The notes: generated by a model from the letters alone, not told the origin. A stretch of 64,000 nt of DNA from Macrostomum hystrix (GCA_950097015.1 CATNEN010000003.1:1426001-1490000); one strand, 5' to 3'. Counted from the stretch's first letter, positions 7,910 to 41,100 are shown. Program-made: numbers and translations.

Positions 7910-8717
7910 GCCTGACACCTCACCCTTGCAAACACCACTGGCCTGACACCTCACCCCATGCAAACACCACTGGCCTGACACCTCACCCCTTGCAAACAGC
8001 ACTGGCCTGACACCTCACCCCTTGCAAACACCACTGGCCTGACACCTCACCCCTTGCAAACACCACTGGCCTGACACCTCACCCTTGCAAACACCACTGG
8101 CCTGACACCTCACCCCATGCAAACACCACTGGCCTGACACCTCACCCCTTGCAAACAGCACTGGCCTGACACCTCACCCCTTGCAAACACCACTGGCCTG
8201 ACACCTCACCCCTTGCAAACACCACTGGCCTGACACCTCACCCCTTGCAAACACCACTGGCCTGACACCTCACCCCTTGCAAACACCACTGGCCTGACAC
8301 ATCATCCCTTGCAAACACCAGTCGGCTGACACATCACCCCATGCAAACACCAGTCGGCTGACACATCACCCCATGCAAACACTAGTCGCCTGACACATCA
8401 CCCCATGCAAACACCAGTCGGCTGACACATCACCCCATGCAAACACCAGTCGGCTGACACATCACCCCATGCAAACACCAGTCGGCTGACACATCACCCC
8501 ATGCAAACACTAGTCGCCTGACACATCACCCCATGCAAACACCAGTCGGCTGACACATCACCCCTTGCAAACACCAGTCGGCTGACACATCACCCCATGC
8601 AAACACTAGTCGGCTGACACATCACCCCATGCAAACACCAGTCGGCTGACACATCACCCCATGCAAACACCAGTCGGCTGACACATCACCCCTTGCAAAC
8701 ACCAGTGGCCTGACACC
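7910..8717. repeat. 32-bp intronic minisatellite (CCTGACACCTCACCCCTTGCAAACACCACTGG), ~25 units
   Basis: Seen directly; the second half uses a variant unit. Confidence 0.95.
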
Positions 8718-9521
8718 CATTGAAACACCACCAAAAAGTCAGTAAAAGCATTCTACTCAGAAAAAAGCAGTTTAAAGCTTGCCATGTTCACTGCCTTCAA
8801 ACAATTGAAAATCGATGACGCGACTTTCAACAGCCGGGTAAGGCACTCCAGTTTGTTCAACTGAACAGCGAACCAGCCAAGGATTATGACGCATCCACTG
8901 ACGAAAGTGCAACTGATGAATGCTGATAAACTGGTCTTGCTGAAATGTTAGACAACGAGCCCTAAATTTAATTGATTTGCTAGTGAGCAGTACAAAGACT
9001 ATGGGGATAATTAGAATTGCCAAATCTTTTTTCGGTGTCTCTCAAAACACCGCTGGCTGCGGGTCTAGTGTCACCAAATGATGTGTCATTTCCTGCAGCC
9101 CTCCAGCAATTAAAAAAACTAATGTCTGCTTTTATTGCTGATTATACTGTATCGATGATATTGTTAACGGCTAATGTGATAAGAGCCATTGAATTATATA
9201 GTTCGTAATCTAACCTTTGTCTTGTCGAGTAATTCCTCAGTTCGGTTATCTGTGGCGTTGACGAGCCAGCAGCTGTGAAGCACGCCCCAATGACTGCAGC
9301 TGTGCGATGTAACATATATGGATCTAGAGATTCCCTCACGGTCACGATTATGGCTAAACCAGCCAAGGTCTACTTTTGTTGCGCAAGGAGCTGAAATTTT
9401 AATAACATTATCCTAATCATATCCCAGATTTAGACAAATTTATGCTCATATAGAGTGCTCAACAGACAAAACGATTGTGACAAGCACTAGGTAATAGAGG
9501 ACAGAATTGGGTGGACGGAGG

Positions 9522-10312
9522 TGAGATGAGACCTGGAAGAGATGAGATAGGGAGAGAGGAGAAAAGGGGAAGAGTTGAGACGGGAGAGATAAGACGGGAG
9601 AAAGATAAGACGGGAGAGAGATAAGACGGGAGAGAGATAAGACAGGAGAGAGATGAGAAAGGGGAGAGATGAGACAGGGGAGAGATGAGACAGGGGAGAT
9701 ATGAGACAGGAGAGAGATAAGACAGGGAGAGAGATGAGACAGGAGAGAGATGAGACATGGGAGAGATGAGACAGGAGAGAGATGAGACATGGGAGAGATG
9801 AGACAGGAGAGAGATGAGACACGGGAGAGATGAGGCAGGGCAGAGATGAGACGGGGGAATGAGACAGGAGAGAAATGAAACAGGAGAGAGATGAGACATG
9901 GGAGAGATGAGGCAGGAGAGAGATGAGACATGGGAGAGATGAGACAGGAGAGAGATGAGACATGGGAGAGATGAGACAGGAGAGAGATGAGACATGGGAG
10001 AGATGAGACAGGAGAGAGATGAGACATGAGAGAGATGAGACAGGAGAGAGATGAGACATGGGAGAGATGAGACAGGAGAGAGATGAGACATGGGAGAGAT
10101 GAGACAGGAGAGAGATGAGACAGGGGAGAGATGAGACAGGAGAGAGATGAGACATGGGAGAGATGAGACAGGAGAGAGATGAGACATGGGAGAGATGAGA
10201 CAGGAGAGAGATGAGACATGGGAGAGATGAGACAGGAGAGAGATGAGACGGGGGAATGAGACAGGAGAGAAATGAGACACGAGAGAGATGAGACAGGGGG
10301 GAGATAAGACAG
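9522..10312. repeat. Purine-rich ~16-bp intronic minisatellite (GAGAGATGAGACAGGA / GAGAGATGAGACATGG)
   Basis: Seen directly. Confidence 0.93.
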
Positions 10313-10895
10313 AGCTGATTTACAGAAATCAACTATTTGAAGACCCCTGTAAAACATCGGTTTACCAGAAATCCTGTTGACAGTGAACGTTTCACCGATT
10401 TTCTTGATAAACTGATTCTGCTGAATAGCATGGCACTTGATGGAGGCTTCCATTAGCGAGTTCGTCACCAAAATTTCGTAGATTGAAGTCAGGCTTAACG
10501 CTGTGCGATTTCGTTTCGATTTAGTCGATTCTCTGATCTGAAATTGGGAGAAATCCACAAAAATGTATAGACAGGGGCACAACAAGATAAATAAGGCGGA
10601 TAGGCCCGTAATTGAGTTAAGGTAATAATTTATCTTTCTTTTCATTTTTTTTTCTCATTTAGAGCGCACAACTCGTGTATAATTATTTCAGTTTTTTTTT
10701 AGACTAATTTTGTCAAATTTGTATTTAATTTTGAATTTGAATCTAATTTGCGTCAATTTTTTACTGACAGCTCAATTGACCAAAAAAACTTTTAGTACAA
10801 CCTGCAACTTGTTATCTAATAAACAAAAATATGCGTGCATTTAACTGCGTGAGGCTCCGTGATTTAATACGCAGATGTACGAGTAATCACTGATT

Positions 10896-11946
10896 GTGTG
10901 ACTGAATTATCGATTAGTGTGACTGAATTATCGACTAGTGTGACTGAATTATCGACAAGTGTGACTGAATTATCGATTACTGTGACTGAATTATCGATTA
11001 CTGTAACTGAATTATCGATTAGTGTGACTGAATTATCGATTAGTGTGGGTGAATTATCGATTAGTGTGGCTGAATTATCGATTAGTGTGACTGAATTATC
11101 GACAAGTGTGACTGAATTATCGATTACTGTGACTGAAATATCGACTAGTGTGGCTGAATTATCGATTAGTGTGACTGAATTATCGATTAATGTGGCTGAA
11201 TTATCGATTAGTGTGACTGAAATATCGACTAGTGTGGCTGAATTATCGATTAGTGTGGCTGAATTATCGATTAGTGTGGGTGAATTATCAATTAGTGTGG
11301 GTGAATTATCGATTAGTGTGACTGAATTATCGATTAATGTGGCTGAATTATCGATTAGTGTGACTGAAATATCGACTAGTGTGACTGAATTATCGATTAG
11401 TGTGGCTGAATTATCGATTAGTGTGACTGAATTATCGATTAATGTGGCTGAATTATCGATTAGTGTGACTGAAATATCGACTAGTGTGGCTGAATTATCG
11501 ATTAGTGTGGCTGAATTATCGATTAGTGTGGGTGAATTATCAATTAGTGTGGGTGAATTATCGATTAGTGTGGGTGAATTATCGATTAGTGTGGCTGAAT
11601 TATCGATTAGTGTGGGTGAATTATCGATTAGTGTGGCTGAATTATCGATTAGTGTGGCTGAATTATCGATTAGTGTGACTGAATAATCGATTAGTGTGGG
11701 TGAATTATCGATTAGTGTGACTGAATAATCGATTAGTGTGACTGAATAATCGATTAGTGTGACTGAATTATCGATTAGTGTGACTGAATAATCGATTAGT
11801 GTGACTGAATAATCGATTAGTGTGACTGAATAATCGATTAGTGTGACTGAATTATCGATTAGTGTGACTGAATTATCGATTAGTGTGGGTGCATTTTCGA
11901 TTAGTGTGGGTGCATTTTCGATTAGTGTGGGTGAATTATCGATTAG
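10896..11946. repeat. 21-bp minisatellite (GTGACTGAATTATCGATTAGT), ~50 units
   Basis: Seen directly. Confidence 0.95.
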
Positions 11947-12221
11947 ATTGACTAAAACATGCACCATACAGTTTTTTGTCAGCAAAATCCAGCCTCTTTA
12001 AAGTTTTCTAAGAAACGCAGTTTCCCGTCCTTAAACTACTAGAAGCCATTGTGCTGACTTTGCTGCTGCCATTGATACGTCAGTGTGAAGTATTTGTTCT
12101 CCTGCTTTTTGTGACACACTTCTTCTAATGGCAAAGACTTTCTCACTCCAATCATGACCACGATTTACAAAGAAAGGATGCAAAAATTACTGTTTTAATA
12201 GTCGTTTAAATATGTGGAGGT

Positions 12222-12227
12222 TTTATT
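12222..12227 (-). terminator. Polyadenylation signal of peptide gene copy 1
   Basis: AATAAA about 147 nt after the stop codon; the same signal is at 39004-39009 in copy 2. Confidence 0.6.
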
Positions 12228-12373
12228 CTACGCTCGAAAATCCAGGGTCAAATACATGCTAACTGCTGCAATAACTATGATCAGTAATTGTTATTCTGTT
12301 GAGTGCTGTAGGAACAAATCGTGGGCGAGTCCAGGTCAGTTGTCACGTGTGCTCAGACAGTGTTGAGAAGGGC

Positions 12374-12646
12374 CTACTTGCCAGGGATCGGCAGCATGCG
12401 GTAGATCCTGTAGGCGGTCTTGGCGACGCGCCACACGCGCCCCCACCTGATGCGGATGCGGCGCAGACGGATGAACTTCTTCTGCAGCTCGGCGGCCTTC
12501 TCCTCCGACATGTCCGACTCGTCCAGGTCAGCCAGGGCCTCCAGCGCCGCCAGCGACTCGGCTTCCTCCTCCGACAGCTCCTGGCTGGGCCTGGCGACTG
12601 CCAGAGCTGCGCACAGCAGGAGTCCGAGAGCAAACTGCCACTTCAT
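12374..12646 (-). CDS. Putative antimicrobial peptide precursor, 90 aa, intronless (copy 1)
   Basis: Signal peptide MKWQFALGLLLCAALAVA; 39-aa propiece with 13 D/E ending in KK; 33-aa FIRLRRIRIRWGRVWRVAKTAYRIYRMLPIPGK (9 R, 2 K, no acidic residues). GC3-rich codons, upstream TATAAAT and downstream AATAAA. Confidence 0.9.
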   Translation of the reverse strand: MKWQFALGLLLCAALAVARPSQELSEEEAESLAALEALADLDESDMSEEKAAELQKKFIRLRRIRIRWGRVWRVAKTAYRIYRMLPIPGK

Positions 12647-12737
12647 GTCTGTGCTGCTGCTGTTGCTTGATGAAGCAGGTAGAGAAACTGAGAGTTAGCT
12701 TTGGCTTGGAGCTCTACTCAGCATTTAGAGACCTCTG

Positions 12738-12744
12738 ATTTATA
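12738..12744 (-). promoter_or_regulatory. TATA box of peptide gene copy 1
   Basis: TATAAAT about 92 nt upstream of the ATG; conserved in copy 2. Confidence 0.65.
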
Positions 12745-13399
12745 CACTCGGAATCGGCACGTTTTTCCGGTCAGCGGAATGCAGGCTCCGAAATGCCGTC
12801 TTCCACGCGCCCTTGGCCTTTTTAAGTGCTGACCTCACAGTAATACAGTGGTCTAAACCTAAATTAATTTTCAATTGTTATCATTGAACTTGAGAACTGT
12901 TTAGAATTTGCTTTTCTGCTCACTGCATATTAGATGAGGCTCTTTGGTACTGAGAGTTGGCGAGTTCAAAAGCAGCCAAATTGAATGAGAAATTCTCTTA
13001 TTGTCCTCTAACCCAGAAGAGAGCATTGTATTTTCGGTGGCAGATGAGCTGCGCCTCAAGTTTTAGCTGTCTCTGCCAAGGCTAGCTTATTTGTTTCGTT
13101 AATTATTTGTTGGCTCTGACTGAGAAATAAAGAATGGGCTGGCTGTGCCGCTCACTTTTCAAAGCATCTCAGTAACATTTAGAGATTAGATGGGTGACGT
13201 GCGCCGTAGAATAGTTTTTATGATGGTCAACCAGTGCGACACAAATTCAAGCTTAAGCTGATTGTACAGGGGCTCATGGCTCAAGACTGAATCCAAACCT
13301 GATCACTAGGTCTTTACAATATTACTGCATCGTTGAGTGTGCTTAACAAAAATGATAGGAGTACCATAACCATAATTGGTGGCACCCGATTGGGCCAGA

Positions 13400-21088: not shown

Positions 21089-22136
21089 AGTGCAAGTGAA
21101 ATATGTATTTCCATGACTCTGTTAAGTCCGTTGGTGCTATTGACGAGCATGCAGATATCCATGACAGATAAATTGGCTTGTTTGTGATTTTTTGCTTGAG
21201 TTTTCAGAATTTTCTATTTAAATCGGATTCCCTGTACAAAAGTTACAAAATAAACTATAGTTGATATTTACTCATCTGAGGAAAGAGTACTCATCTATTT
21301 TCGGTCTAATGCATGTGAGCGAATTATAAATTTAGTTTCTGTTCTTTACTTTCGAGTTCCTTGTTCACTGTCGCGTCAAAAAAGCTTGTACAGTGTCTAA
21401 ATATATACCTGACCTAACTGTACATTTGGTATATGCAGCCAAATACTCGCGTGCTTGGACAGCAAATCCATGTCACAGTCAAAGCACATACCACATACCA
21501 AAAATATCCGAGAGTATTCCATAGATTCCTCACATTCGCTGTCTTAGTCGTATGTGCGTCAAAATTGATGTACTTTACAGCCAACGGCTTGTCCAAGCCT
21601 TTCCCTGGATTTTCCCTGGATTATCCCTGGATTATTCCTTGGTGGCCTGCGTATAGTTCCATGTTCCAGTCAAGGCTAAATATAGAGGTGCAGTCAAAAG
21701 CACTGGAGCAGTTGTGCTAAACAGTTTCAGCCCGTACATTCAACTACTGTACTTTGTAGTGCAAAATGAACAGTGAACATGTTTTGCCATATTTGCATTA
21801 TAATATATATTATCCATATACTAGTATAGTATGAAGTTTTTGCATTTTTAGCTTTACTTTTACTGATTTAAAGATCATACAAAAATGTTACACTGCTAAA
21901 GTTGAGAAAGTCCATTATTTGAGGTACAAAAATGACATGAGGATGACATAAAAAAGGTGGAACTTCATAAAAGTAAATATACGCTAGTGAGCGATAAAAA
22001 TAGCAATACGTACGAAAGAGTACAGTCAAACTTGTAATGGCAGCTAGTAACACCAATTTATAAGCTCAGATTTTATCAGAGCTTCAAGGGCCAGCATCAG
22101 AAAGTGTCAGTAATACTAGGGAATACTGCATTCCTG

Positions 22137-23714
22137 ATGTGTTTCTACATAATTATTTGGACATCGTGTGTGACGCTTGCGTTCGCCTTGCTCATGTAGG
22201 TGGGGAGCTTTCGACGATTTTCTGCTAGCAGACAGAATGCTACAGCAATATTTTTTCCCTCACTCCTGTGCCTTTCAGAGTTGAGTCGGCAAATCATTAC
22301 TGCGTTAAAAAGCTCACAGTCACCTTAGAGCTGGATGACTTCTATCACAGAGACGAGACAATCATTCCTCACGTTGTTGACGAACCTTCAAGCGAGAATC
22401 GGGAGCGCATGAGCTGTCGATGGGATGTGAGGTTGAGATCGGTCCAACCTGACCTGCAGCTGGTTCTGGAGATGCGTGATCGTAACCATGGAAACGAAGA
22501 AACAGAAGAGCAGGGCAGCGGACAGTCAGAAGGACTCATGCTGCTCGACTCAAATACTGTGCTCCGTCATGGGATGTTTCTGGTCCAACCAATGAGAGAT
22601 CGGTGAGACAAGGTTTTGTGTCTGAAACACAATGTGTTCTTTTGTGTTTTGTGTTCTTTTAATGTTTTTGTTTGCTTAAAATTAGTTTTTTAATTCAGCT
22701 TGGCAATTTTAGCATGCACTTTACAGTGCAAGCGAACTGGGACAGGAAAGCACAGAAGCCCATTGCTCAGAGCCTGAGGATTGTGATACCTCTCCCGGGA
22801 GTGTGCAGCAGAGACATGCTCAGCTTCCGCGGCAACTGCTACGCCGTGACCACCGCTCTCCAGACGACCAGTCAGGTGGTGTCCAGCGTCGGAGGCAGCG
22901 CACAGCTCGCCAGTTTCAGCAGCATGGTTGAGATCGCAGACTTCATCAGAGCTAGTGAGTGAGCGATAATCATTCAGGTTGATGGGATTCCATATTCTCC
23001 CTCAATGAAAATATTTCAAACATTGACTTTCAGACAACGCCAGGCTGAACTCTTTTTGCGTACCGGCAGCCGCTGAGTTTGAATCTGCCGGTCCGACTCG
23101 GTCTGTTCCTCGCGTCAGTCGATGGCGCAGTCCTGTCCATCGGCAGGAGTAATGGAAGCTGCGCGCTGCTGCAACAAGTCCCGGCGCTCACGCAGTTTAG
23201 GTAGGCCATGCGGTCCGCTTAGTTCTTAGTTGGGTTCTAATGCCTGGAGGCTTCTGACCAAAATCACTCCTGACATTTCAGGACTATCGACGGTCCGTGC
23301 GCTTCTCTTCGATTTTTAACAGATTCGAACCAGCCGAACGAAGCCGTAGTCGAGTTCGTCAGCTGTAACAGGTCGATGCTGTCGCTTTTGAACTTCCGGG
23401 AGACTTCCCTGGAGAGTACCCAGCACTGTACCGATGTAAATGGGAGCCATTTTGATAACCAGCTTGCAGAGCTTGAGAAAATATTTCTAGAATTCAATTT
23501 CAACGGAAGTAATGCCAGTTCCAATTCTACGAGTACAGACTACTGGAATTTACACAGTGACGCTTCTGTCCTGAAATCGCACTTCTCTATGATGGCATAC
23601 ATTCTTCTCGCTTACGCTGCAATAGCTGCTGCTTTAGTGATTTTACGAAGGGTTTGCAGCCATAAAAACAATAGTTACTCGAGTGTGCATCAGGCTGCTA
23701 TGCAGACAGTTTGA
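22137..23714 (+). pseudogene. Type B receptor copy B2 with +1 frameshift in exon 4
   Basis: Exons 22137-22195, 22279-22602, 22713-22954, 23034-23200 and 23282-23714. At ~23051 AAC TCTTTTTGCG TAC replaces B1 AAC TCGTTTCGG TAC (10 vs 9 nt). The offset to B1 changes from 18271 to 18272 and the frame ends at TAA 23150-23152. Confidence 0.65.
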
Positions 23715-23976
23715 CATTTTCCTATTTGTATCCTAAATAGTTCACTTGGCACAAGCCTCAGTAGGGTCGCTAGGAACCTGACTTCTCACAAAAAATAATA
23801 TATGATTATATTTTGCTAATTATTATTATTATTTTAAATATTATTCTTATTATATTTATTATTATTTTTATTATTATTATTATTATTATTATTACTTTTT
23901 TATTATTTTTATTGTTATTATAAAGTGCGCACTCAAAAGATTTTCTTTATTTTTTCAATCGCAACTGCGAGAAGGC

Positions 23977-25627
23977 ACTTACAACCGGATCTAATTTCAC
24001 TTAACAACCGGATCTAATTTCACTTAACAACCGGATCTCATTTCACTTAACAACCGGATCTAATTTCACTTAACAACCGGATCTAATTTCACTTAACAAC
24101 CGGATCTAATTTCACTTAACAACCGGATCTAATTTCACTTAAAAACCGAATCTAATTTCACTTAACAACCGGATCTAATTTCACTTAACAACCGGATCTA
24201 ATTTCACTTAAAAACCGAATCTAATTTCACTTAACAACCGGATCTAATTTCACTTAACAACCGGATCTAACTTCACTTAACAGCGGAATCTAATTTCACT
24301 TAACAACCGAATCTAATTTCACTTAACAACCGAATCTAATTTCACTTAACAACCGAATCTAATTTCATTTAACAACGGAATCTAATTTCACTTAACAACC
24401 GGATCTAATTTCACTTAACAGCGGAATCTAATTTCACTTAACAACCGGATCTAATTTCACTTAACAACCGGATCTAATTTCACTTAATTACCGGATCTAA
24501 TTTCACTTAAGAACCGAATCTAATTTCACTTAACAACGGAATCTAATTTCACTTAACAACCGGATCTAATTTCACTTAACAACCGGATCTAATTTCACTT
24601 AACAACCGGATCTAATTTCACTTAAAAACCGAATTTAATTTCACTTAACAACCGAATCTAATTTCACTTAACAACCGGATCTAATTTCACTTAACAATGG
24701 AATCTAATTTCACTTAACAACCGAATCTAATTTCACTTAACAATCGAATCTAATTTCACTTAACAACCGGATCTAATTTCACTTAACAACCGAATCTAAT
24801 TTCACTTAACAACCGAATCTAATTTCACTTAACAACCGAATCTGATTTCACTTAACAACCGGATCTAATTTCCCTTAACAACCGGATCTAATTTCACTTA
24901 ACAACCGGATCTAATTTCACTTAACAACCGAATCTAATTTCACTTAACAACCGGATCTAATTTCCCTTAACAACCGGATCTAATTTCACTTAACAACCGG
25001 ATCTAATTTCACTTAACAACCGAATCTAATTTCACTTAACAACCGGATCTCATTTCACTTAACAACCGGATCTAATTTCACTTAACAACCGGATCTAATT
25101 TCACTTAACAACCGGATCTAATTTCACTTAACAACCAGATCTAATTTCCCTTAACAACCGGATCTAATTTCACTTAACAACCGGATCTAATTTCACTTAA
25201 CAACCGAATCTAATTTCACTTAACAACCGGATCTAATTTCACTTAACAACCGGATCTAATTCACTTAATAACCGAATCTAATTTCACTTAACCACCGGAT
25301 CTAATTTCACTTAACAACGGAATCTAATTTCACTTAACAACCGAATCTAATTTCACTTAACAACGGAATCTAATTTCACTTAACAACCGGATCTAATTTC
25401 ACTTAACAACCGGATCTAATTTCACTTAACAACCGGATCTAATTTCACTTAACAACCGAATCTAATTTCACTTAACAACGGAATCTAATTTCACTTAACA
25501 ACCGGATCTAATTTCACTTAACAACCGGATCTAATTTCACTTAACAACCGGATCTAATTTCACTTAACAACGGAATCTAATTTCACTTAACAATTCCGGA
25601 TCTAATTTCACTTAACAACCGAATCTA
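23977..25627. repeat. 23-bp minisatellite, ~72 units
   Basis: Seen directly; same unit as 5705. Confidence 0.95.
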
Positions 25628-25840
25628 AAAGGCGAAAAACGAAAGCAAAAGCGAACGCAGAAAAGACACGCAGAACGAAAAGTTTTTCTTGGTGAAAAAA
25701 TATGTTGTTAAATATTGAATTAATTTTTAGGCATAAAATCACATTTTTTGTATTGTCACTTATATTGTTTTCTAGATTTCTCTACCTTTTGTGTCCAGAA
25801 TCTTGTAAATTCAGCTTCAAATTTCAAATTCTTGTAAATT

Positions 25841-26383
25841 CAACAAGTCCCGGCGCTCACGCAGTTTAGGTAGGCCATGCGGTCCGCTTAGTTCTTAGTT
25901 GGGTTCTAATGCCTGGAGGCTTCTGACCAAAATCACTCCTGACATTTCAGGACTATCGACGGTCCGTGCGCTTCTCTTCGATTTTTAACAGATTCGAACC
26001 AGCCGAACGAAGCCGTAGTCGAGTTCGTCAGCTGTAACAGGTCGATGCTGTCGCTTTTGAACTTCCGGGAGACTTCCCTGGAGAGTACCCAGCACTGTAC
26101 CGATGTAAATGGGAGCCATTTTGATAACCAGCTTGCAGAGCTTGAGAAAATATTTCTAGAATTCAATTTCAACGGAAGTAATGCCAGTTCCAATTCTACG
26201 AGTACAGACTACTGGAATTTACACAGTGACGCTTCTGTCCTGAAATCGCACTTCTCTATGATGGCATACATTCTTCTCGCTTACGCTGCAATAGCTGCTG
26301 CTTTAGTGATTTTACGAAGGGTTTGCAGCCATAAAAACAATAGTTACTCGAGTGTGCATCAGGCTGCTATGCAGACAGTTTGA
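25841..26383 (+). pseudogene. 3' fragment of type B receptor (end of exon 4, intron 4, exon 5)
   Basis: Matches 23172-23714 at offset 2669. It begins mid-exon at a tandem-duplication junction. Confidence 0.8.
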
Positions 26384-26647
26384 CATTTTCCTATTCGTAT
26401 CCTAAATAGTTCACTAGGCACAATTGCCTCAATAGGGTCGCTAGGAACCTGACTTCTCACAAAAAAATAATATATGATTATATTTTGCTAATTATTATTA
26501 TTATTTTAAATATTATTCTTATTATATTTATTATTATTTTTATTATTATTATTATTATTATTATTACTTTTTTATTATTTTTATTGTTATTATAAAGTGC
26601 GCACTCAAAAGATTTTCTTTATTTTTTCAATCGCAACTGCGAGAAGG

Positions 26648-28347
26648 CACTTACAACCGGATCTAATTTCACTTAACAACCGGATCTAATTTCACTTAAC
26701 AACCGGATCTAATTTCACTTAACAACCGGATCTCATTTCACTTAACAACCGGATCTAATTTCACTTAACAACCGGATCTAATTTCACTTAACAACCGGAT
26801 CTAATTTCACTTAACAACCGGATCTAATTTCACTTAACAACCGGATCTAATTTCACTTAACAACCGGATCTAATTTCACTTAACAACCGGATCTAATTTC
26901 ACTTAACAACCGGATCTAATTTCACTTAACAACCGGATCTAATTTCACTTAAAAACCGAATCTAATTTCACTTAAAAACCGAATCTAATTTCACTTAACA
27001 ACCGGATCTAATTTCACTTAACAACCGGATCTAATTTCACTTAAAAACCAAATCTAATTTCACTTAACAACCGGATCTAATTTCACTTAACAACCGGATC
27101 TAATTTCACTTAACAGCGGAATCTAATTTCACTTAACAACCGAATCTAATTTCACTTAACAACCGAATCTAATTTCACTTAACAACCGAATCTAATTTCA
27201 TTTAACAACGGAATCTAATTTCACTTAACAACCGGATCTAATTTCACTTAACAGCGGAATCTAATTTCACTTAACAACCGGATCTAATTTCACTTAACAA
27301 CCGGATCTAATTTCACTTAATTACCGGATCTAATTTCACTTAAGAATCGAATCTAATTTCACTTAACAACGGAATCTAATTTCACTTAACAACCGGATCT
27401 AATTTCACTTATCAACCGGATCTAATTTCACTTAACAACCGGATCTAATTTCACTTAAAAACCGAATCTAATTTCCCTTAACAACCGGATCTAATTTCAC
27501 TTAACAACCGGATCTAATTTCACTTAACAACCGAATCTAATTTCACTTAACAACCGGATCTAATTTCCCTTAACAACCGGATCTCATTTCACTTAACAAC
27601 CGGATCTAATTTCACTTAACAACCGAATCTAATTTCACTTAACAACCGGATCTAATTTCACTTAACAACCGGATCTAATTCACTTAATAACCGGATCTAA
27701 TTTCACTTAACAACGGAATCTAATTTCACTTAACAACCGGATCTAATTTCACTTAACAACCGGATCTAATTTCACTTAACAACCGGATCTAATTTCACTT
27801 AACAACCGAATCTAATTTCACTTAACAACCGGATCTAATTTCCCTTAACAACCGGATCTAATTTCACTTAACAACCGGATCTAATTTCACTTAACAACCG
27901 AATCTAATTTCACTTAACAACCGGATCTAATTTCACTTAACAACCGGATCTAATTTCACTTAACAACCGGATCTAATTTCACTTAACAACCGGATCTAAT
28001 TTCACTTAACAACCAGATCTAATTTCCCTTAACAACCGGATCTAATTTCACTTAACAACCGGATCTAATTTCACTTAACAACCGAATCTAATTTCACTTA
28101 ACAACCGGATCTAATTTCACTTAACAACCGGATCTAATTCACTTAATAACCGGATGTAATTTCACTTAAGAACCGAATCTAATTTCACTTAACAACGGAA
28201 TCTAATTTCACTTAACAACCGAATCTAATTTCACTTAACAACGGAATCTAATTTCACTTAACAATTCCGGATCTAATTTCACTTAACAACGGAATCTAAT
28301 TTCACTTAACAATTCCGGATCTAATTTCACTTAACAACCGAATCTAA
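26648..28347. repeat. 23-bp minisatellite, ~74 units
   Basis: Seen directly; same unit as 5705. Confidence 0.95.
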
Positions 28348-29103
28348 AAGGCGAAAAACGAAAGCAAAAGCGAACGCAGAAAAGACACGCAGAACGAAAA
28401 GTTTTTCTTGGTGAAAAAATATGTTGTTAAATATTGAATTAATTTTTAGGCATAAAATCACATTTTTTGTATTGTCACTTATATTGTTTTCTAGATTTCT
28501 CTACCTTTTGTGTCCAGAATCTTGTAAATTCAGCTTCAAATTTCACCCTGTGTCGAATTATGGATTCTGTTTTTGTAGTCAGGAGACTGTTTTGCATCAC
28601 GTTGCTGTTCATGTTTGCCTCGATACCGCAGCCAGTGTTATTCGGATCGGTTACTAATTTCCAGATAATAGAGTCTTGTCGATTAGAATTAGAGTGAAGC
28701 CTAATTCTAATTAGAGTGATAATTATGTTTATCATTGAATTAGTGGAAGTGTAAAATGGTTCAAATATTCGTTAGACTTTTGAAGACCTATAGATTGCGC
28801 AATCGAGGTGGAACGACATTTTCATCAGACATTATTGCTAAGAAAACAAGAAGTATTAGAATCTGCCGCAGATTTTCCGGCTTTGCTAACGTAAATCGTT
28901 CGGCTTTTTAAAGAACTTTGAAATCATTCGAGAACGATAGTGACGGTGTGGCCCATGCGGCGCAGACTGTTAGCATTATGCTTGAAACATAGTGATCTGT
29001 CAACTGAGCAGTTTATCGTTTCTTAGGCACTGATTTGTCTAGGCACTGAAATGTCTGAGCAAGTTGGACAAACATGGGTGACTTGCTGCTGCTGCTGTGA
29101 CTC

Positions 29104-32100
29104 CTAAACAATGAGCGGTCCAGAGGATGCGGCCGTGTCTATAGTTCTATTTGGGTAGGCATTGCTGTTCGCAGTGTATTTGCAGCTATAAATGGTTGGG
29201 TAATCGTAGGTTTCGCATCCCTGGGCTGGCGCTGTCGGAGTAGGATACGGTCGTACTTCAATGAATTTCTTCTTCTCACAGGCTTTGCAGCAGGTGAACA
29301 GCCTGAAGCCGTGGCTAGTCCATACCTGCCGGCGCGATGAAGAATAGCCCTGCGTTTGAGAATGACAAAAAATGTTTATCTCAGGACTGAGAATCGAACT
29401 CTCGACCTCAGGTGAAAAGTCTGAAAGTCTAACGACTATATAGGCTGGTTTTCGCCTAAAAATACACAATGGAGATAGGAATTTTTCAGTTTTTGCACTT
29501 TTAAAAGGCGATAGTTTTTTTGGAAGCAGACCCAAAGATCCTCTTATGATTTAACTTTCCTAACATGTTGTTCCTAGGAATTTGACGAAACATTTTTTCC
29601 TTTAAAATTTGAATATCTAACTATTTAAAAGTCAATAAATCATAAGGTTTAGAGACTAATCTTATAATATTCATAAATAAATTCATTTAAGCACATATAG
29701 AAAAGGAAGGAAAAAACCCTTATTGTTCATAAATCAAGCCTGACAGAAACGATGAAGAATTATTTTTTGCTGAGAATTAAAACTTCCACAAACGTAGTTT
29801 CCCTTCATACTACTCCTATCGGTCTTTGAGTAGTATTGCAATTCAAAACGGTAATACACATCTGTGCAGCTTACCAGTGTGACTTTTATGGTAACGAGGG
29901 CTGTTATCGAAATTAGCAGAATAACAATGGTACTGCCGGCTACAGATAAGAAGACTTTGTTGCTATGTGTCAGGAAACCGTTGTAACTAGCTGGAATAAT
30001 TAACATTCATTTATAATCAATGCACGAGTCACCCACATTAAAGTTAATTCAACTCACGACATACTACTTACACTTGACACATTGGTAGAATCGTTCGCCT
30101 GACACCTCACCCTTGCAAACACCGCTGGCCTGACACCTCACCCCTTGCAAACACCACTGGCCTGACAACTCACCCCATGCAAACACCACTGGCCTGACAC
30201 CTCACCCCTTGCAAACACCGCTGGCCTGACACCTCACCCCTTGCAAACACCACTGGCCTGACACCTCACCCCATGCAAAAACCACTGGCCTGACACCTCA
30301 CCCCTTGCAAACACCACTGGCCTGACACCTCACCCCTTGCAAACACCACTGGCCTGACAACTCACCCCATGCAAACACCACTGGCCTGACACCTCACCCC
30401 ATGCAAACACCACTGGCCTGACACCTCACCCCATGCAAACACCACTGGCCTGACACCTCACCCCTTGCAAACACCACTGGCCTGACACCTCACCCCTTGC
30501 AAACACCACTGGCCTGACACCTCACCCCTTGCAAACACCACTGGCCTGACACCTCACCCCTTGCAAACACCACTGGCCTGACACCCATTGAAACACCACC
30601 AAAAAGTCAGTAAAAGCATTCTACTCAGAAAAAAGCAGTTTAAAGCTTGCCATGTTCACTGCCTTCAAACAATTGAAAATCGATGACGCGACTTTCAACA
30701 GCCGGGTAAGGCACTCCAGTTTGTTCAACTGAACAGCGAACCAGCCAAGGATTATGACGCATCCACTGACGAAAGTGCAACTGATGAATGCTGATAAACT
30801 GGTCTTGCTGAAATGTTAGACAACGAGCCCTAAATTTAATTGATTTGCTAGTGAGCAGTACAAAGACTATGGGGATAATTAGAATTGCCAAATCTTTTTT
30901 CGGTGTCTCTCAAAACACCGCTGGCTGCGGGTCTAGTGTCACCAAATGATGTGTCATTTCCTGCAGCCCTCCAGCAATTAAAAAAACTAATGTCTGCTTT
31001 TATTGCTGATTATACTGTATCGATGATATTGTTAACGGCTAATGTGATAAGAACCATTGAATTATATAGTTCGTAATCTAACCTTTGTCTTGTCGAGTAA
31101 TTCCTCAGTTCGGTTATCTGTGGCGTTGACGAGCCAGCAGCGGTGAAGCACGCCCCAATGACTGCAGCTGTGCGATGTAACATATATGGATCTAGAGATT
31201 CCCTCACGGTCACGATTATGGCTAAACCAGCCAAGGTCTACTTTTGTTGCGCAAGGAGCTGAAATTTTAATAACATTATCCTAATCATATCCCAGATTTA
31301 GACAAACTTATGCTCATATAGAGTGCTCAACAGACAAAACGATTGTGACAAGCAATAGGTAATAGAGGACAGAATTGGGTGGACGGAGGTGAGATGAGAC
31401 CTGGAAGAGATGAGATAGGGGAGAGAGGAGAAAAGGGGAAGAGTTGAGACGGGAGAGATAAGACAGGAGAGAGATGAGACAGGGAGAGAGATGAGACAAG
31501 AGAGAGATGAGACATGGGAGAGATAAGACAGAAGAGAGATGTGACAGGGGAGAGATGAGACAGGGGAGAGATGAGACAGGAGAGAGATGAGACAGGGAGA
31601 GAGATGAGACAGGAGAGAGATGAGACAGGGAGAGAGATGAGACAAGAGAGAGATGAGACATGGGAGAGATAAGACAGAAGAGAGATGTGACAGGGGAGAG
31701 ATGAGACAGGGGAGAGATGAGACAGGAGAGAGATGAGACATGGGAGAGATGAGACAGGAGAGAGATGAGACATGGGAGAGATGAGACAGGAGGGAGATGA
31801 GACACGGGAGAGATGAGGCAGGGGAGAGATGAGACGGGGGAATGAGACAGGAGAGAAATGAGACACGAGAGAGATGAGACAGGGGGGAGATAAGACAGAG
31901 CTGATTTACAGAAATCAACTATTTGAAGACCCCTGTAAAACATCGGTTTACCAGAAATCCTGTTGACAGTGAACGTTTCACCGATTTTCTTGATAAACTG
32001 ATTCTGCTGAATAGCATGGCACTTGATGGAGGCTTCCATTAGCGAGTTCGTCACCAAAATTTCGTAGATTGAAGTCAGGCTTAACGCTGTGCGATTTCGT

Positions 32101-35100
32101 TTCGACTTAGTCGATTCTCTGATCTAAAATTGGGAGAAATCCACAAAAATGTATAGACCGGGGCACAACAAGATAAATAAGGCGGATAGGCCCGTAATTG
32201 AGTTAAGGTAATAATTTATCTTTCTTTTCATTTTTTCATTATTTCTCATTTAGAGCGCACAACTCGTGTATAATTATTTCAGTTTTTTTTAAAGATTAAT
32301 TTTGTCAAATTTGTATTTAACTAGCTTTTTTTGCCCGTTGTTTTTGGGGCAGAAATTTAAAGCAAAGCAGTAAGCAATTCACGTCTCTGTATTAACTTTA
32401 TAGTGAAGGTCACCATTTATTTATTTACTGCATTAATGAAAAGTGAAGAGTTTGTTTAAGGGCGTTTTAAGTAAAAAATAAGTGAAAAGTTTGTCCAAAC
32501 AGCCCCCTCTTGATTACTTCTTTAGAAACATGTTTCTTAGCCACTCCTCTATACAGTCAGTGGCAGATCCAGGAATTTTGTTTTGGGGCGGTCTGTCAGG
32601 GGAGCGCCATGAGAATCACAGAGGGGGTGCCAGCGGCCGAAAAAGGGCGCCAGGAGCCAAGAAAGGGCGCCAGCGGCTGAAAAACGGGAGCCAGCGGCTG
32701 AAAAAGGGGCGCCAGCGGCCGAAAAGGGGCGCCAGTGCTGCGACTGGCGCCCCTGGTGGGGGCATCTTATTCCCATGATTAAAATTTAGGGGGGCGACTG
32801 CCCCCCCCGCCCCCCCCCTAAATCTGCCTCTGTATACAGTATGCATGTGCACGCGTATACATAAGGAAAATAGCCATGGCTGCATGGCATAACAATAACA
32901 ATGTCAAAGAAACAAAATTAAACTGTTTCAGAGTTCAGAGTTAGACAGGTCAAGGTTAATTCGTGACTACTTTTCTATTAATTGCTTGCGAGTCACCTCA
33001 AGGCCTGGGGATACACCACATTCTTCGTTCTTCCCCTTGGTGCGAAAATGAATAGGCCAGCTGGAGTTCCGACACGGGAGCAGGCGACATAAAGCTGCCC
33101 ATGCGAGAAGCAAGGAGTCTCCAGGTTGATGCCAGCCACCTTCAGCGACTGTCCCTGAGCCTTGTTAATAGTCATCGCAAAGCACACTCTCACAGGGAAC
33201 TGCAGTCGCTTGAACTGAAATGGCAGGTCCGTGGGGATAATTGGAATCCGGGGAACGAACACAGACTCTCCTCTGCCAGATCCAGTCATTATCGTGGCCT
33301 CAATCACGTGTGGGAAGAGCCGCCTGACTATCAGTCTGGTGCCGTTACACAGCCTTGGCGCATTCAGGTTGCGGAGGAGCATAATTGGTGCCCCAACTTT
33401 CAGCTGCAAGTTGTGCGATGGAGTTCCAGGAGGATCTAGAGAGTTCAGAAACTCAACAGGATACTCCACAGCGGTGTCATCAGTCAACGTTGTATCAATT
33501 GACTTGTAGGTGAAAACTGCACCTGGCAACTCCTGAAGCAGTTGGTAGTTAATTTCGTTGGCGGCATCATTTCTAGGACACAGAATTGCCCTCTCTGACA
33601 GCCAGTCAACGTCAGCATATCGAACCATCAGGTTCGGTTAAACTTTTGCCTTGAGCTCCTGCACTGACTGCACAATGGTTCCGATTGTAGCGATCGATGA
33701 CTGCCCATCCTCGGTGCTAATCTCCAGCAGACCATTGCCGATTCGCAATAGATTGGCAGAGAACTCATGAGCTGTTTCGTCTCCTTGAATTGTAGCTCTC
33801 ATGTTTGTTCGTAGGTGCAACTTCACAACCGATGGCCACAGGTGAGATGATTTTAGGCAAGCATTAATCTCATCAGCAGGAGTGCCACGCGGAATCACAG
33901 GCAGCGTCTGTCTAAAGTCTCCAGACAGCAGCAGAGTGACACCACCCATCAGTTGATCGCCAGCCTCTCTCTTTCTTCTATCCCAGGCTGGCTGGAGAGA
34001 AATATCGACCGGAGAGCCCTGCGCACTGGGACGCCACCGCACTCACCGCACTCAGTCTCAGTGCTGCTTGGGGGCCAGTAGACAGTCTAGGGGTTTGGGC
34101 TGTGCACATTCACGGCTTGAAATACAATGTACAGTCTGGGGCTTCGGCGCCCGGGGAAGGGAGGGGGTGGCTGTAATAAAATTTGGCCCGCAGAGTGGCG
34201 GAGGGGAGTTGGGGTGGCTGTCCTCGGAAAACAAAAAGTGACTCACTTTGAGATGATGCAGCTTTGCTCTGGATTGAGTAGAGATGTTCAAAATTGTCAG
34301 CATTGTCGGAAAACATGTAAAGTGTAAGTGGATCAAATTTGGAGAAAATCTGACAAAGTGGGGCGACGATATGTCGAATTGAGTGATTTTTTGACGATTT
34401 TTGAGCAGTTTTTTGCACTTTTGAGCAGGAAGGAAATGATTTTTCGGGAATTTGAGTAGCCTATTGCACTCAGCGTAGGTGGTTTTAGGTATGTGCAAAG
34501 TTTGGTGCGATTTGGTTGAGCGGTTTCGGCGTCTATAAAGACAAAAGGTTGCACACACACAGACAGACACACACACACACAGACAGAGTTTTCACTTTTA
34601 TATATATAGATTTTGAATTTGAATCTAATTTGCGTCAATTTTTTACTGACAGCTCAATTGACCCAAAAAAACTTTTTAGTACAACCTGCAACTTGTTATC
34701 TAATAAACGAAAATATGCGTGCATTTAACTGCGTGAGGCTCCGTGATTTAATACGCAAATGTACGAGTAATCACTGATTGTGTGACTGAATTATCGATTA
34801 GTGTGACTGAATTATCGATTAGTGTGACTGAATTATCGATTAGTGTGACTGAATTATCAATTAGTGTGGGTGAATTATTGATTAGTGTGGGTGAATTATT
34901 GATTAGTGTGGGTCAATTATTGATTAGTGTGGGTGAATTATCGACTAGTGTGACTGAATTATCTATTAGTGTTGGTGAATTATGGATTAGAGTCGGTTAA
35001 TTATCGATTATTGTGGCTGAATTATCGATTAGTGTGGCTGAATTATCGACTAGTGTGACTGAATTATCTATTAGTGTGACTGAATCATCGATTAGTGTGA

Positions 35101-38100
35101 CTGAATTATCGATTAGTGTGACTGAATAATCGATTAGTGTGGGTGAATGATCGATTAGTGTGACTGAATTATCGATTAGTGTGACTGAATTATCGATTAG
35201 TGTGACTGAATTATCTATTAGTGTGACTGAATCATCGATTAGTGTGACTGAATTATCGATTAGTGTGACTGAATAATCGATTAGTGTGGGTGAATGATCG
35301 ATTAGTGTGACTGAATTATCGATTAGTGTGACTGAATAATCGATTAGTGAGGGTGAATTATCGATTAGTGTGACTGAATTATCGATTAGTGTGGCTGAAT
35401 TATCGATTAGTGTGACTTAATTATCGACTAGTGTGACTGAATTATAGATTAGTGCGACTAAATTATCGACTAGTGTGACTGAATCATCGACTAGTGTGAC
35501 TGAATTATCGACTAGTGTGACTGAATTATCGATTAGTGTGACTGAATTATCGACTAGTGTGACTGAATTATCGATTAGTGCGACTGAATTGTCGATTAGT
35601 GTGACTGAATTATCGATTAGTGTGACTGAATTATCGATTAGTGTGACTGAATTATCGATTAGTGTGACTGAATTATCGATTAGTGTGACTGAATTATCGA
35701 TTAGTGTGACTGAATTATCGATTAGTGTGACTGAATTATCGATTAGTGTGACTGAATTGTCGATTAGTGTGACTGAATTATCGATTAGTGTGACTGAATT
35801 ATCGACTAGTGTGACTGAATTGTCGATTAGTGTGACTGAATTATCGATTAGTGTGACTGAATCATCGATTAGTGTGACTGAATTATCGATTAGTGTGACT
35901 GAATAATCGATTAGTGTGGGTGAATGATCGATTAGTGTGACTGAATTATCGATTAGTGTGACTGAATAATCGATTAGTGTGGGTGAATTATCGATTAGTG
36001 TGACTGAATTATCGATTAGTGTGGCTGAATTATCAATTTGTGTGGGTGAATTATTGATTAGTGTGACTGAATAATCGATTAGTGAGGGTGAATTATCGAT
36101 TAGTGTGACTGAATTATCGATTAGTGTGACTGAATTATCGATTAGTGTGACTTAATTATCGACTAGTGTGACTGAATTATAGATTAGTGCGACTAAATTA
36201 TCGACTAGTGTGACTGAATCATCGACTAGTGTGACTGAATTGTCGATTAGTGTGACTGAATTATCGATTAGTGTGACTGAATTATCGACTAGTGTGACTG
36301 AATTATCGATTAGTGCGACTGAATTGTCGATTAGTGTGACTGAATTATCGATTAGTGTGACTGAATTATCGATTAGTGTGACTGAATTATCGATTAGTGT
36401 GACTGAATTATCGATTAGTGTGACTGAATTATCGATTAGTGTGACTGAATTATCGATTAGTGTGACTGAATTATCGATTAGTGTGACTGAATTGTCGATT
36501 AGTGTGACTGAATTATCGATTAGTGTGACTGAATTATCGACTAGTGTGACTGAATTGTCGATTAGTGTGACTGAATTATCTATTAGTGTGACTGAATCAT
36601 CGATTAGTGTGACTGAATTATCGATTAGTGTGACTGAATAATCGATTAGTGTGGGTGAATGATCGATTAGTGTGACTGAATTATCGATTAGTGTGACTGA
36701 ATAATCGATTAGTGTGGGTGAATTATCGATTAGTGTGACTGAATTATCGATTAGTGTGGCTGAATTATCAATTTGTGTGGGTGAATTATTGATTAGTGTG
36801 GGTGAATTATCGATTAGTGTGGCTGAATTATCGATTAGTGTGGGTGAGTTATGGATTAGTGTGGGTGCATTTTCGAATAGTGTCGCTGAATTATCGATTA
36901 GTGTGCCCGAATTATCGATTAGTGTTGGTGAGTTATCGATTAGTGTGCGTGCATTTTCGATTTGTGTGGGTGCATTTTCGATTAGTGTGGGTGAATTATC
37001 GATTAGTGTGACTGAATTATCGATTAGTGTGACTGAATTATCGATTAGTGTGACTGAATTATCTATTAGTGTGGGTGAATTATTGGTTAGTGTGGGTGAA
37101 TTATCGATTAGTGTGGGTGAATTATCGATTAGTGTGGCTGAATTATCGACTAGTGTGACTGAATTATCTATTAGTGTGACTGAATCATCGATTAGTGTGA
37201 CTGAATTATTGATTAGTGTGGGTGAATTATCGATTAGTGTGGCTGAATTATCGACTAGTGTGACTGAATTATCTATTAGTGTGACTGAATCATCGATTAG
37301 TGTGACTGAATTATTGATTAGTGTGGGTGAATTATCGATTAGTGTGGCTGAATTATCGACTAGTGTGACTGAATTATCTATTAGTGTGACTGAATCATCG
37401 ATTAGTGTGACTGAATTATTGATTAGTGTGGGTGAATTATTGATTAGTGTGGGTCAATTATTGATTATTGTGGCTGAATTATCGATTAGTGTGGCTGAAT
37501 TATCGACTAGTGTGACTGAATTATCTATTAGTGTGACTGAATCATCGATTAGTGTGACTGAATTATCGATTAGTGTGACTGAATCATCGATTAGTGTGAC
37601 TGAATAATCGATTAGTGTGGGTGAATGATCGATTAGTGTGACTGAATTATCGATTAGTGTGACTGAATAATCGATTAGTGTGGGTGAATGATCGATTAGT
37701 GTGACTGAATTATCGATTAGTGTGGCTGAATTATCAATTTGTGTGGGTGAATTATTGATTAGTGTGGGTGAATTATCGATTAGTGTGGCTGAATTATCGA
37801 TTAGTGTGACTTAATTATCGACTAGTGTGACTGAATTATAGATTAGTGCGACTAAATTATCGACTAGTGTGACTTAATCATCGACTAGTCTGACTGAATT
37901 GTCGATTAGTGTGACTGAATTATCGATTAGTGTGACTGAATTATCGACTAGTGTGACTGAATTATCGATTAGTGTGACTTAATTATCGATTAGTGTGACT
38001 GAATTATCGACTAGTGTGACTGAATTATCGATTAGTGCGACTGAATTGTCGATTAGTGTGACTGAATTATCGATTAGTGTGACTGAATTATCGATTAGTG

Positions 38101-41100
38101 TGACTGAATTATCGATTAGTGTGACTGAATTATCGATTAGTGTGACTGAATTATCGATTAGTGTGACTGAATTATCGATTAGTGTGACTGAATTATCGAT
38201 TAGTGTGACTGAATTGTCGATTAGTGTGACTGAATTGTCGATTAGTGTGACTGAATTATCGACTAGTGTGACTGAATTGTCGATTAGTGTGACTGAATTA
38301 TCTATTAGTGTGACTGAATCATCGATTAGTGTGACTGAATTATCGATTAGTGTGACTGAATAATCGATTAGTGTGGGTGAATGATCGATTAGTGTGACTG
38401 AATTATCGATTAGTGTGACTGAATAATCGATTAGTGTGGGTGAATTATCGATTAGTGTGACTGAATTATCGATTAGTGTGGCTGAATTATCAATTTGTGT
38501 GGGTGAATTATTGATTAGTGTGGGTGAATTATCGATTAGTGTGGCTGAATTATCGATTAGTGTGGGTGAGTTATGGATTAGTGTGGGTGCATTTTCGAAT
38601 AGTGTCGCTGAATTATCGATTAGTGTGCCCGAATTATCGATTAGTGTTGGTGAATTATCGATTAGTGTGCGTGCATTTTCGATTAGTGTGGGTGCATTTT
38701 CGATTAGTGTGGGTGAATTATCGATTAGATTGACTAAAACATGCACCATACAGTTTTTTGTCAGCAAAATCCAGCCTCTTTAAATTTTTCTAAGAAACGC
38801 AGTTTCCCGTCCTTAAACTACTAGAAGCCATTGTGCTGACTTTGCTGCTGCCATTAATACGTCAGTGTGAAGTATTTGTTCTCCTGCTCTTTGTGACTCA
38901 CTTCTTCTAATGGCAAAGACTTTCTCACTCCAATCATGACCACGATTTACAAAGAAAGGATGCAAAAATTACTATTTTAATAGTCGTTTAAATATGTGGA
39001 GGTTTTATTCTACGCTCGAAAATCCAGGGTCAAATACATGCTAACTGCTGCAATAACCATGATCAGTAATTGTTATTCTGTTGGGTGCCGTAGGAGCAAA
39101 TCGTGGGCGAGTCCAGGTCAGTTGTCACGTGTGCTCAGACAGTGTTGAGAAGGGCCTACTTGCCAGGGATCGGCAGCATGCGGTAGATCCTGTAGGCGGT
39201 CTTGGCGACGCGCCACACGCGCCCCCACCTGATGCGGATGCGGCGCAGACGGATGAACTTCTTCTGCAGCTCGGCGGCCTTCTCCTCCGACATGTCCGAC
39301 TCGTCCAGGTCAGCCAGGGCCTCCAGCGCCGCCAGCGACTCGGCTTCCTCCTCCGACAGCTCCTGGCTGGGCCTGGCGACTGCCAGAGCTGCGCACAGCA
39401 GGAGTCCGAGAGCAAACTGCCACTTCATGTCTGTGCTGCTGCTGTTGCTTGATGAAGCAGGTAGAGAAGCTGAGAGTTAGCTTTGGCTTGGAGCTCTACT
39501 CAGCATTTAGAGACCTCTGATTTATACACTCGGAATCGGCACGTTTTTCCGGTCAGCGGAATGCAGGCTCCGAAATGCCGTCTTCCACGCGCCCTTGGCC
39601 TTTTTAAGTGCTCACCTCACAGTAATACAGTGGTCTAAACCTAAATTAATTTTCAATTGTTATCATTGAACTTGAGAACTGTTTAGAATTTGCTTTTCTG
39701 CTCACTGCATATTAGATGAGGCTCTTTGGTACTGAAAGTTGGCGAGTTCAACAGCAGCCAAATTGAATGAGAAATTCTCTTATTGTCCTATAAACCTAAT
39801 ACAAAAGAGAGCATTGTATTTTTAGGGGCAGATGAGCTGCGCCTCACGCTGCAGGTGTCTCTGCTAATGCTAGTCTATTTGTTTTCTTAGTTAGTTTTGC
39901 AGCCAATGCTGGCCAAAGTAATTAAGTTTGCAATCCCAAAATGTTCCTCCAAGTTTGAGCCTGATCCCAATAAGTACTTCATCGATGAATGTGTGTATGC
40001 TCAATAATAATAATAATTTTTTATTTAATTAATTATAACACGAATTGTTTCAGTAGAGTCGCGAATCGAACCCCGACCTTCAAGTCGTGAGTGCGACGCC
40101 CTAATCACTAGGCTAAAACTATGGTCCCTGGTCTACGGTTCGTCTAAGGTTGGTCGAAGGTTCAAGTGGCCTGTTGCAGCACCATTTCCCATTGTCTAGC
40201 ATTTTAACGATCATTGTCTTGCATTTTAACGATCATTGTCTAGCATTTTAACGACCATTGTCTAGCATTTTAACGATAATTGTCTAGCATTTTAACAATC
40301 ATTATCTAGCATTTTAACGATCATTGTCTAGCATTTTAACGATCATTGTCTAGCATTTTAACGATCATTGTCTAGCATTTTAACGATCATTGTCTAGCAT
40401 TTTAACGATCGTCGTCTAGCATTTTAACGATCATTGTCTAGCATTTTAACGATCATTGTCTAGCATTTTAACGATCATTGTCTAGCATTTTAACGATCAT
40501 TGTCTAGCATTTTAACGATCATTGTCTAGCATTTTAACGATCATTGTCTAGCATTTTAACGATCATTGTCTAGCATTTTAACGATCATTGTCTAGCATTT
40601 TAACGATCATTGTTCGTAGTTTTTATGCAAGGCTTCTGGCTTTACCATGGACTCTTCTTAAATGGTTAATATCTCTCTGTTAATATCTGTTTTGGCGTGC
40701 CAGGTGCTATAAAAATAATGTTTATATTTAGGAACTTCATTGCTGCACACACATCCAGTCTCATTTGTTTTATTCGACATCTGGACACAGCCAGGTCTAT
40801 GGGAGAAACCTCTAATCATACGGGGGTTCCTTGAAAGTGTGCAGTTTCACCAAACGCTTCGCGCACTGGTTTCTTGGTCCTGACTGCGTTCAACAGCCAA
40901 GCATCATCTCTCCATTGTACCGTAGTAAATTGATAATCGAGCTCGGATGGCAACACACTCACCAATCTGACCAGAGTCAAATTAGTAACCCGGTCGCGAG
41001 CTGACCGTAAATAGCACAGGTGCTCAGGTTCCGGGTAGGAGTCCTTCGACGTGAAATTGACAGTAACACGACGGCCTAGCACCCACACTGGGTATACGGA

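Follow-up and report, generated by a model that had tools for sequence, protein, structure and literature searches.

Several described families of antimicrobial peptides (AMPs) are released from small secreted precursors. The precursors of the frog dermaseptin superfamily (PF03032) consist of a signal peptide, an acidic propiece, a dibasic processing site and a cationic linear peptide, variable in sequence and in many cases amidated; across this large multigene family, a conserved prepro part is combined with a hypervariable mature part. The arminins of Hydra possess a signal, an anionic N-terminal part and a cationic C-terminal peptide, and constitute a taxon-restricted, multi-copy family with charge-balanced two-part precursors in an aquatic invertebrate. 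Mussel myticalins, which were found by genome mining, are multigenic, linear, cationic and cysteine-free, and likewise combine a conserved signal with an anionic pro-region, but their order is reversed, the cationic peptide coming first and the anionic extension being C-terminal. Among flatworms, mesco-1, -2 and -3 of Mesocestoides corti (PMC11546468; two of the three genes were described as complete and intronless) and fAMP-LP-5 and -17 (PMC10414684) are likewise candidates derived from small secreted cationic precursors. According to Irvine et al. 2023 (PMC10414684), flatworms possess neither myticalins nor the classical lophotrochozoan AMP families, and AMP research on free-living flatworms has been described as being at an early stage. 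Here, a gene at 39156-39428 on the minus strand of a 64,000-nucleotide (nt) stretch of Macrostomum hystrix DNA (GCA_950097015.1, CATNEN010000003.1:1426001-1490000; the window) was compared with these systems. An original prediction, made from the sequence, had proposed that it encodes an amidated, membrane-active peptide of about 31 residues. The gene proved to be a transcribed member of a large and fast-diverging prepropeptide family, and host defence was the best single reading of its function, with a probability of about one in two.

The 90-residue product of the gene falls into three parts (Table 1). The signal of 18 residues is hydrophobic and ends in A-V-A before R-P, residues 19-57 include 13 acidic residues and the KK pair at 56-57, and the 31-residue tail (58-88) contains nine Arg, one Lys, two Trp and two Tyr but neither acidic residues nor Cys, and precedes the terminal G-K. 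The original prediction had read the signal, the propiece, the dibasic site, the terminal G-K and the Cys-free, Arg/Trp-rich character of the tail correctly. Its count of 11 basic residues was right if the Lys of the terminal G-K is included, but not for the 31-mer itself, which has 9 Arg and 1 Lys. In the proposed maturation, signal peptidase would cleave after Ala18, and the acidic propiece (residues 19-55, net charge -11) would neutralise the cationic tail in transit. A subtilisin-like convertase would cut after the invariant Lys57, and a carboxypeptidase would take off Lys90, so that Gly89 could be converted into a C-terminal amide. The expected product is a Cys-free, Arg/Trp/Tyr-rich peptide of 31 residues with a net charge of about +10. 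Among the domains encoded in the genome are convertase P-domains and those of copper type II monooxygenases, although the latter match does not separate an amidating enzyme from dopamine-beta-hydroxylase-like enzymes. The gene probably yields a processed, secreted, cationic peptide.

The family was delimited by a six-frame search of the genome, which gave 61 matches. At least 55 intact open reading frames (ORFs), 44 of them unique, were recovered, clustered on at least ten contigs, and the gene matched its paralogues with E values of 1.8e-52 to 1e-13. Residues M1, Q4, L9, C12 and Lys57 were invariant in an alignment of 37 sequences; the protein has the signal invariants and an acidic propiece ending in the invariant Lys, and thus belongs to the 'MKWQ' prepropeptide family as defined by these features. 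The cleavage site was KK in 45 of the 55 paralogues and AK, EK or SK in the rest, the C-terminus was G, GK, GR, GKK or GKR in 39, and Cys was absent from 52 tails. The median tail had about 25 residues and a charge of +8, and the median propiece charge was -10. Amino acid identity fell from the signal (0.81) through the propiece (0.50) to the tail (0.25), and the pooled ratio of nonsynonymous to synonymous substitution rates (dN/dS) rose in the same order, from 0.22 through 0.68 to 0.89. The whole precursor stayed near neutral, with a mean net charge of +0.6 ± 2.6, and the charges of propiece and tail were correlated at r = -0.75 across 41 unique sequences, without correction for kinship. The rough offset of the tail by the propiece, predicted for one protein, was also seen at the level of the family. 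Likewise, the layout of signal, acidic propiece and cationic tail was strengthened by the invariant Lys, the Gly ends, the hypervariable tails and the charge covariation.

The tails could be sorted into several types: R-I-R-I-R-W, to which the present gene belongs, G-I-R-V-R-K, Arg/Tyr-rich, and short amidated, with Pro/Arg-rich and His-rich tails occurring in Macrostomum lignano. The paralogue cluster at C2:2230258-2253969 (L028-L030) had extreme Arg/Tyr tails with charges of up to +18, and its members are cleaved, as predicted, at AK or EK. Such Arg/Tyr chemistry could suit condensation driven by cation-pi contacts as well as membrane attack. Inverted pairs of paralogues with identical or nearly identical proteins were observed at C1:16871834-16879243 and C5:2871874-2875783 (for example L006/L007 and L012/L013), and a more diverged inverted pair at C3:1724044-1729681. 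This arrangement suggests that the family grows by palindromic duplication. Four members (L013:2292-2576, L032:772-1056, L028:6263-6679 and L029:7219-7413) preserved the signal and the first part of the propiece but had unrelated sequence thereafter, and probably represent copies that are frameshifted or decaying.

The likeness to the frog dermaseptin superfamily is an analogy of layout only. No sequence relationship was found, the PF03032 profile was unmatched, the Macrostomum site is KK instead of the frog KR, the Macrostomum genes are intronless, and the host is a flatworm. In a language-model atlas, frog AMP clusters were among the nearest neighbours at 0.75-0.77, which is below the level of evidence. 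The profile search returned no homology to arminins either, and arminin was compared by description only. The mesco and fAMP-LP peptides that have been tested came from parasitic cestodes and had other sequences.

The reading frame comprises 90 codons followed by TAG, with the ATG at 39428 and the stop at 39156-39158. No earlier start codon was present between the upstream in-frame stop and this ATG, and the 48-nt 5' untranslated region (UTR) contained no ATG. The coding sequence (CDS) had 66% GC and 89% GC at third codon positions (GC3), compared with 37-44% GC in the flanks; the antisense ORFs that overlap it are by-products of its base composition. A chance ORF was rejected in view of the GC3 of 89%, the 55 intact paralogues, the signal dN/dS of 0.2 and the run contigs lying over the ORF, and the reading as a pseudogene was also rejected. 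It is nearly certain that 39156-39428 is a real gene.

Contigs of four public sequencing runs covered a single span, 38986-39476, and every flanking bin was at zero depth (1,021 bases were queried). The contigs had no joints, and sequencing adapters directly abutted both of their ends. Their 3' end lay 18 nt past the AATAAA and their 5' end about 45-50 nt past the TATA box, the start being approximate from contigs. Since the span was crossed without joints, the mRNA was taken to be unspliced and about 491 nt long. Only run X5 is recorded as RNA, the kind of X1, X3 and X16 being guessed or unknown, and the contigs were read as RNA because of their sharp restriction to the predicted transcription unit. 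The original prediction, which had named the absence of a transcript as a ground for abandoning it, had called an intronless 90-residue ORF with its own TATA box and AATAAA; the coordinates were exact, and the signals lie on the minus strand at 39526-39521 (TATAAA) and 39009-39004 (AATAAA). The locus is a functional gene without introns, whose TATA promoter is accompanied by an upstream motif particular to the family.

The same runs gave evidence of variation. In X5, a sediment metatranscriptome, a 342-nt contig of a diverged relative matched window positions 39152-39469 with 12 substitutions and in-frame indels, and related worms thus appear to express the family in nature. The contigs of X1 and X3, which are runs of other organisms, carried a 6-nt deletion at 39231 that removes one Arg-Ile unit. 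The number of Arg-Ile units varied among the paralogues too, and the repeat seems to change its length by slippage of codon pairs.

The upstream regions of distant subfamilies aligned on one promoter module. In 43 of the 55 paralogues, the motif AAA[AC]ACGTG preceded the ATG by 116-135 nt and typically a TATA-like box by 22 nt, and only 49 occurrences were counted in 439 kb when both strands were scanned. Such a box lay between 83 and 119 nt upstream of the start codon in 41 paralogues, and closer to it, at 67 nt, in another (42/55). The present gene carries the shared module, with the motif at 39540-39548 and the TATA box at 39521-39526.

The closest database proteins were hypothetical proteins of M. 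lignano with 65-79% identity, and the homologues of that species end in GK or G. When the family profile was run against 1.84 billion representative proteins, 12 hits were obtained: 11 from M. lignano (ten hypothetical proteins and one Sushi-domain model) and one unnamed protein of a Logan assembly. The multigene family has so far been found only in Macrostomum. A Pfam scan of the protein and 37 family members (E <= 1) gave sub-threshold noise with no family near its curated cut-off, PF03032 was not among these weak hits, and a PDB sequence search with the 31-mer gave no match at E <= 10. Two protein-atlas searches returned scores of at most 0.80, which serve as leads only.

The literature searched contained no paper naming the family, and full-text search with four M. 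lignano gene identifiers and RNA815_1838 returned no paper. The supplements of PMC12732829 (intestine genes) contained none of the family identifiers, PMC7336406 contained none of a second set, and in the accessible part of the supplements of PMC5816591 (germline and neoblast genes) the sole match was an unrelated gene. The AMP-prediction pipeline of Irvine et al. 2023 (PMC10414684) had flagged two M. lignano members, one fragment being scored positive by 100% of the tools. Its supplement S5 lists Mlig001477g4, the closest M. lignano homologue of the present protein, as 'Ungrouped', and Mlig024774g1/g2 as 'Same genome'. The Macrostomum entries of that study were AMP-like candidates cut at internal basic pairs instead of the conserved KK, which were discarded and never named or tested (PMC10414684). 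The view that the peptide belongs to no named family accordingly held for the literature, Pfam and PDB, with the qualification that M. lignano members had been listed before as AMP-like candidates and discarded.

The best single reading, to which a probability of about 50% was assigned, is that the gene encodes a secreted, membrane-active host-defence peptide, antimicrobial or cytolytic. It was preferred because the combination of features described above is a hallmark of AMP and cytolysin superfamilies, and the large number of paralogues would amount to a diverse arsenal. For the AMP class, defined as secreted, cationic and amphipathic, the signal and the charge of +10 were clear. As to amphipathicity, residues 12-27 of the tail had a hydrophobic moment at 100 degrees of 0.62, against 0.33 ± 0.16 in shuffled sequences (p ~0.05), and the strongest moment of the N-terminal R-I repeat of the tail came at 150 degrees. 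AlphaFold2 with the family alignment predicted helices at residues 3-18, 27-45 and 47-84, with a mean predicted local distance difference test score (pLDDT) of 66 and block means of 70-85 over residues 51-80, lower beyond. The amphipathic helix of the original prediction received only modest support from the predicted helix over 47-84 and the moment above that of the shuffles. Under this reading, the family might be the first large gene-encoded linear host-defence superfamily of free-living flatworms, restricted to Macrostomum, with at least 55 genes, a single secretion and neutralisation cassette, one promoter module and hypervariable amidated peptides, independent of the frog, Hydra and insect systems; this wider claim was judged slightly less probable than host defence itself.

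Several points weigh against host defence. For the tail, the pooled dN/dS stays under 1 and does not demonstrate positive selection, the charge correlation is subject to the kinship of the sequences, the amphipathicity is modest, and the AlphaFold2 model had a predicted template modelling score of 0.28. The literature searched reported no assay on a member of the family. In addition, the only published in situ pattern for the M. lignano counterpart is 'gonads' and not a barrier epithelium: Table S11 of Brand et al. 2020, with Ramm et al. 2019 as its reference, gives it for RNA815_1838.3, a transcript of 501 nt with a 364-nt probe, and names Mlig001477.g4 as the top blastn match. The positional RNA sequencing (RNA-seq) of Arbore et al. 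2015 placed the same M. lignano transcript in class 0,0,0, that is, with no regional enrichment. Its level in the head-only piece, which is free of gonads, was about that of whole worms (roughly 2^-11.5 of reads), and these data point to no barrier tissue either. As the in situ pattern and the positional RNA-seq disagree, the expressing tissue was left unassigned.

The gonad pattern is a ground for the main rival, a reproductive secretion made in or around the gonads and acting on gametes, eggs or the partner. Such peptides would protect eggs or sperm, take part in sperm-egg interaction or serve as effectors of sexual conflict, and their diversification would come from sexual selection, not from microbes. 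The pattern was attributed to Ramm et al. 2019, a study of socially sensitive transcripts. The probe was taken to be a family member because its forward primer, translated by hand, agreed in 7 of 8 codons with the piece of 5'UTR that immediately precedes the start codon of P0001. Furthermore, reproductive proteins too are typically fast-evolving, lineage-restricted and expanded in tandem, a theme that has been discussed for Macrostomum. However, the head fragment without gonads equalled whole worms, six family identifiers were absent from the searched part of a germline and neoblast table, and the 364-nt probe consists for the most part of the conserved prepro cassette, so that it may cross-hybridise with other members. 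Expression in the gonads would, moreover, be compatible with an antimicrobial role. Ceratotoxins, andropin and Hydra periculin are AMPs of the reproductive tract or of maternal origin. The reproductive reading was considered unlikely, at somewhat less than one half of the weight given to host defence.

A cytolytic toxin from gland cells or rhabdite-type cells, directed at prey or predators instead of microbes, was judged improbable. Many venom cytolysins share the layout of a conserved prepro part and a hypervariable, cationic, linear, amidated peptide, and expression along the whole body axis would fit, as would a transcript that appears abundant (contig word depth was in the thousands, a poor measure). 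On the other side, the Pfam, profile and PDB searches gave no similarity to any toxin family.

Still less probable was a structural polycation, in which the tails, alone or with the acidic propiece, would form coacervates or a cross-linked matrix of eggshell, adhesive or granules. The contig 2 subfamily with its extreme Arg/Tyr tails, the near-neutral precursor with matched poly-acid and poly-base halves, and the 'gonads' pattern, the gonads being a site where eggshell material is produced, are consistent with it. The strictly conserved dibasic site and the amidation signal nevertheless point to a released small peptide, and the tails are short (median 25 residues), extremely variable and in some cases poor in aromatic residues; expression in the head fragment is a further objection.

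A precursor of an amidated neuropeptide or hormone was rejected as very improbable. The dibasic cleavage site, the C-terminal Gly-Lys and the processing enzyme domains in the genome would fit it. However, conservation is lowest in the predicted bioactive tail (identity 0.25, compared with 0.81 in the signal), whereas neuropeptides constrained by a receptor show the reverse. In addition, +10 is an unusual net charge for a neuropeptide of 31 residues, and at least 55 paralogues and an apparently abundant transcript do not suit a signalling role. A protamine-like sperm nuclear basic protein was also rejected, since all members have a conserved hydrophobic N-terminal signal ending in A-x-A.

If the peptides are defence effectors, the family would represent a taxon-restricted system that arose by convergence and offers dozens of naturally occurring sequence variants, and the transgenesis, RNA interference and in situ tools of Macrostomum would make its function, its regulation through the promoter motif and its evolution directly testable. 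If they are reproductive peptides, the family would be unusually large and fast-diversifying in a model genus for hermaphrodite sexual selection. The conflict raised by the positional RNA-seq, the charge covariation and the presence of both window copies in run contigs are new in this analysis.

Table 1. Features of the gene at 39156-39428 and of its second copy; positions are counted from the first nucleotide of the window.
Feature	Position	Strand	Basis or remark
Coding sequence, 90 codons + TAG	39156..39428	-	GC3 0.89
TATA box TATAAA, 98 nt upstream of ATG	39521..39526	-	Read from sequence
Polyadenylation signal AATAAA	39004..39009	-	Contigs stop 18 nt downstream, at 38986
Upstream promoter motif AAAAACGTG, ~22 nt before TATA box	39540..39548	-	43/55 paralogues carry AAA[AC]ACGTG
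Transcribed unit of ~491 nt, intronless: 48-nt 5'UTR, 273-nt CDS including stop, 170-nt 3'UTR	38986..39476	-	Contigs of four runs
Signal peptide, residues 1-18, predicted cleavage after A-V-A	39375..39428	-	-3/-1 rule; most conserved part of the family
Acidic propiece, residues 19-55, with KK processing site 56-57	39258..39374	-	13 acidic residues; K57 invariant (37 sequences)
Predicted mature peptide, residues 58-88, 31 residues, net +10, Cys-free	39165..39257	-	Composition; predicted helical
C-terminal Gly-Lys, putative carboxypeptidase and amidation signal	39159..39164	-	G/GK/GR/GKK/GKR end in 39/55 paralogues
Second whole-gene copy, identical protein: CDS 12374-12646, TATA 12739-12744, motif 12758-12766, AATAAA 12222-12227	12204..12766	-	Gapless 800-bp alignment

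The two copies of the gene in the window differed at 7 positions of the aligned 800 bp, none of them in the CDS and four in the 3'UTR. The four 3'UTR variants of the second copy were found as a separate X16 contig, with a depth similar to that of the exact-match contig, and both window copies were therefore taken to be represented in the run contigs. The second copy belongs to a segmental duplication that spans about 26.8 kb and in which the arrays of minisatellites are very unequal in length. Between the duplication units 3752-13112 and 22001-39899, a 23-bp unit had 20 and 189 copies and a 21-bp unit 51 and 189 copies, respectively; arrays of 32-bp and 16-bp minisatellites were also unequal. 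A 29-bp satellite of about 706 copies (91% match) occupied 43781-64000, at least 20 kb up to the end of the window, with strong GC and AT skew. In addition, ORFs with Pif1 helicase domains (PIF1, E 4e-18; Pif1 2B domain, E 2e-19) were located at 32993-34576 on the minus strand, in a stretch of about 2.3 kb exclusive to the second duplication unit, which is probably a remnant of a Helitron-type element.

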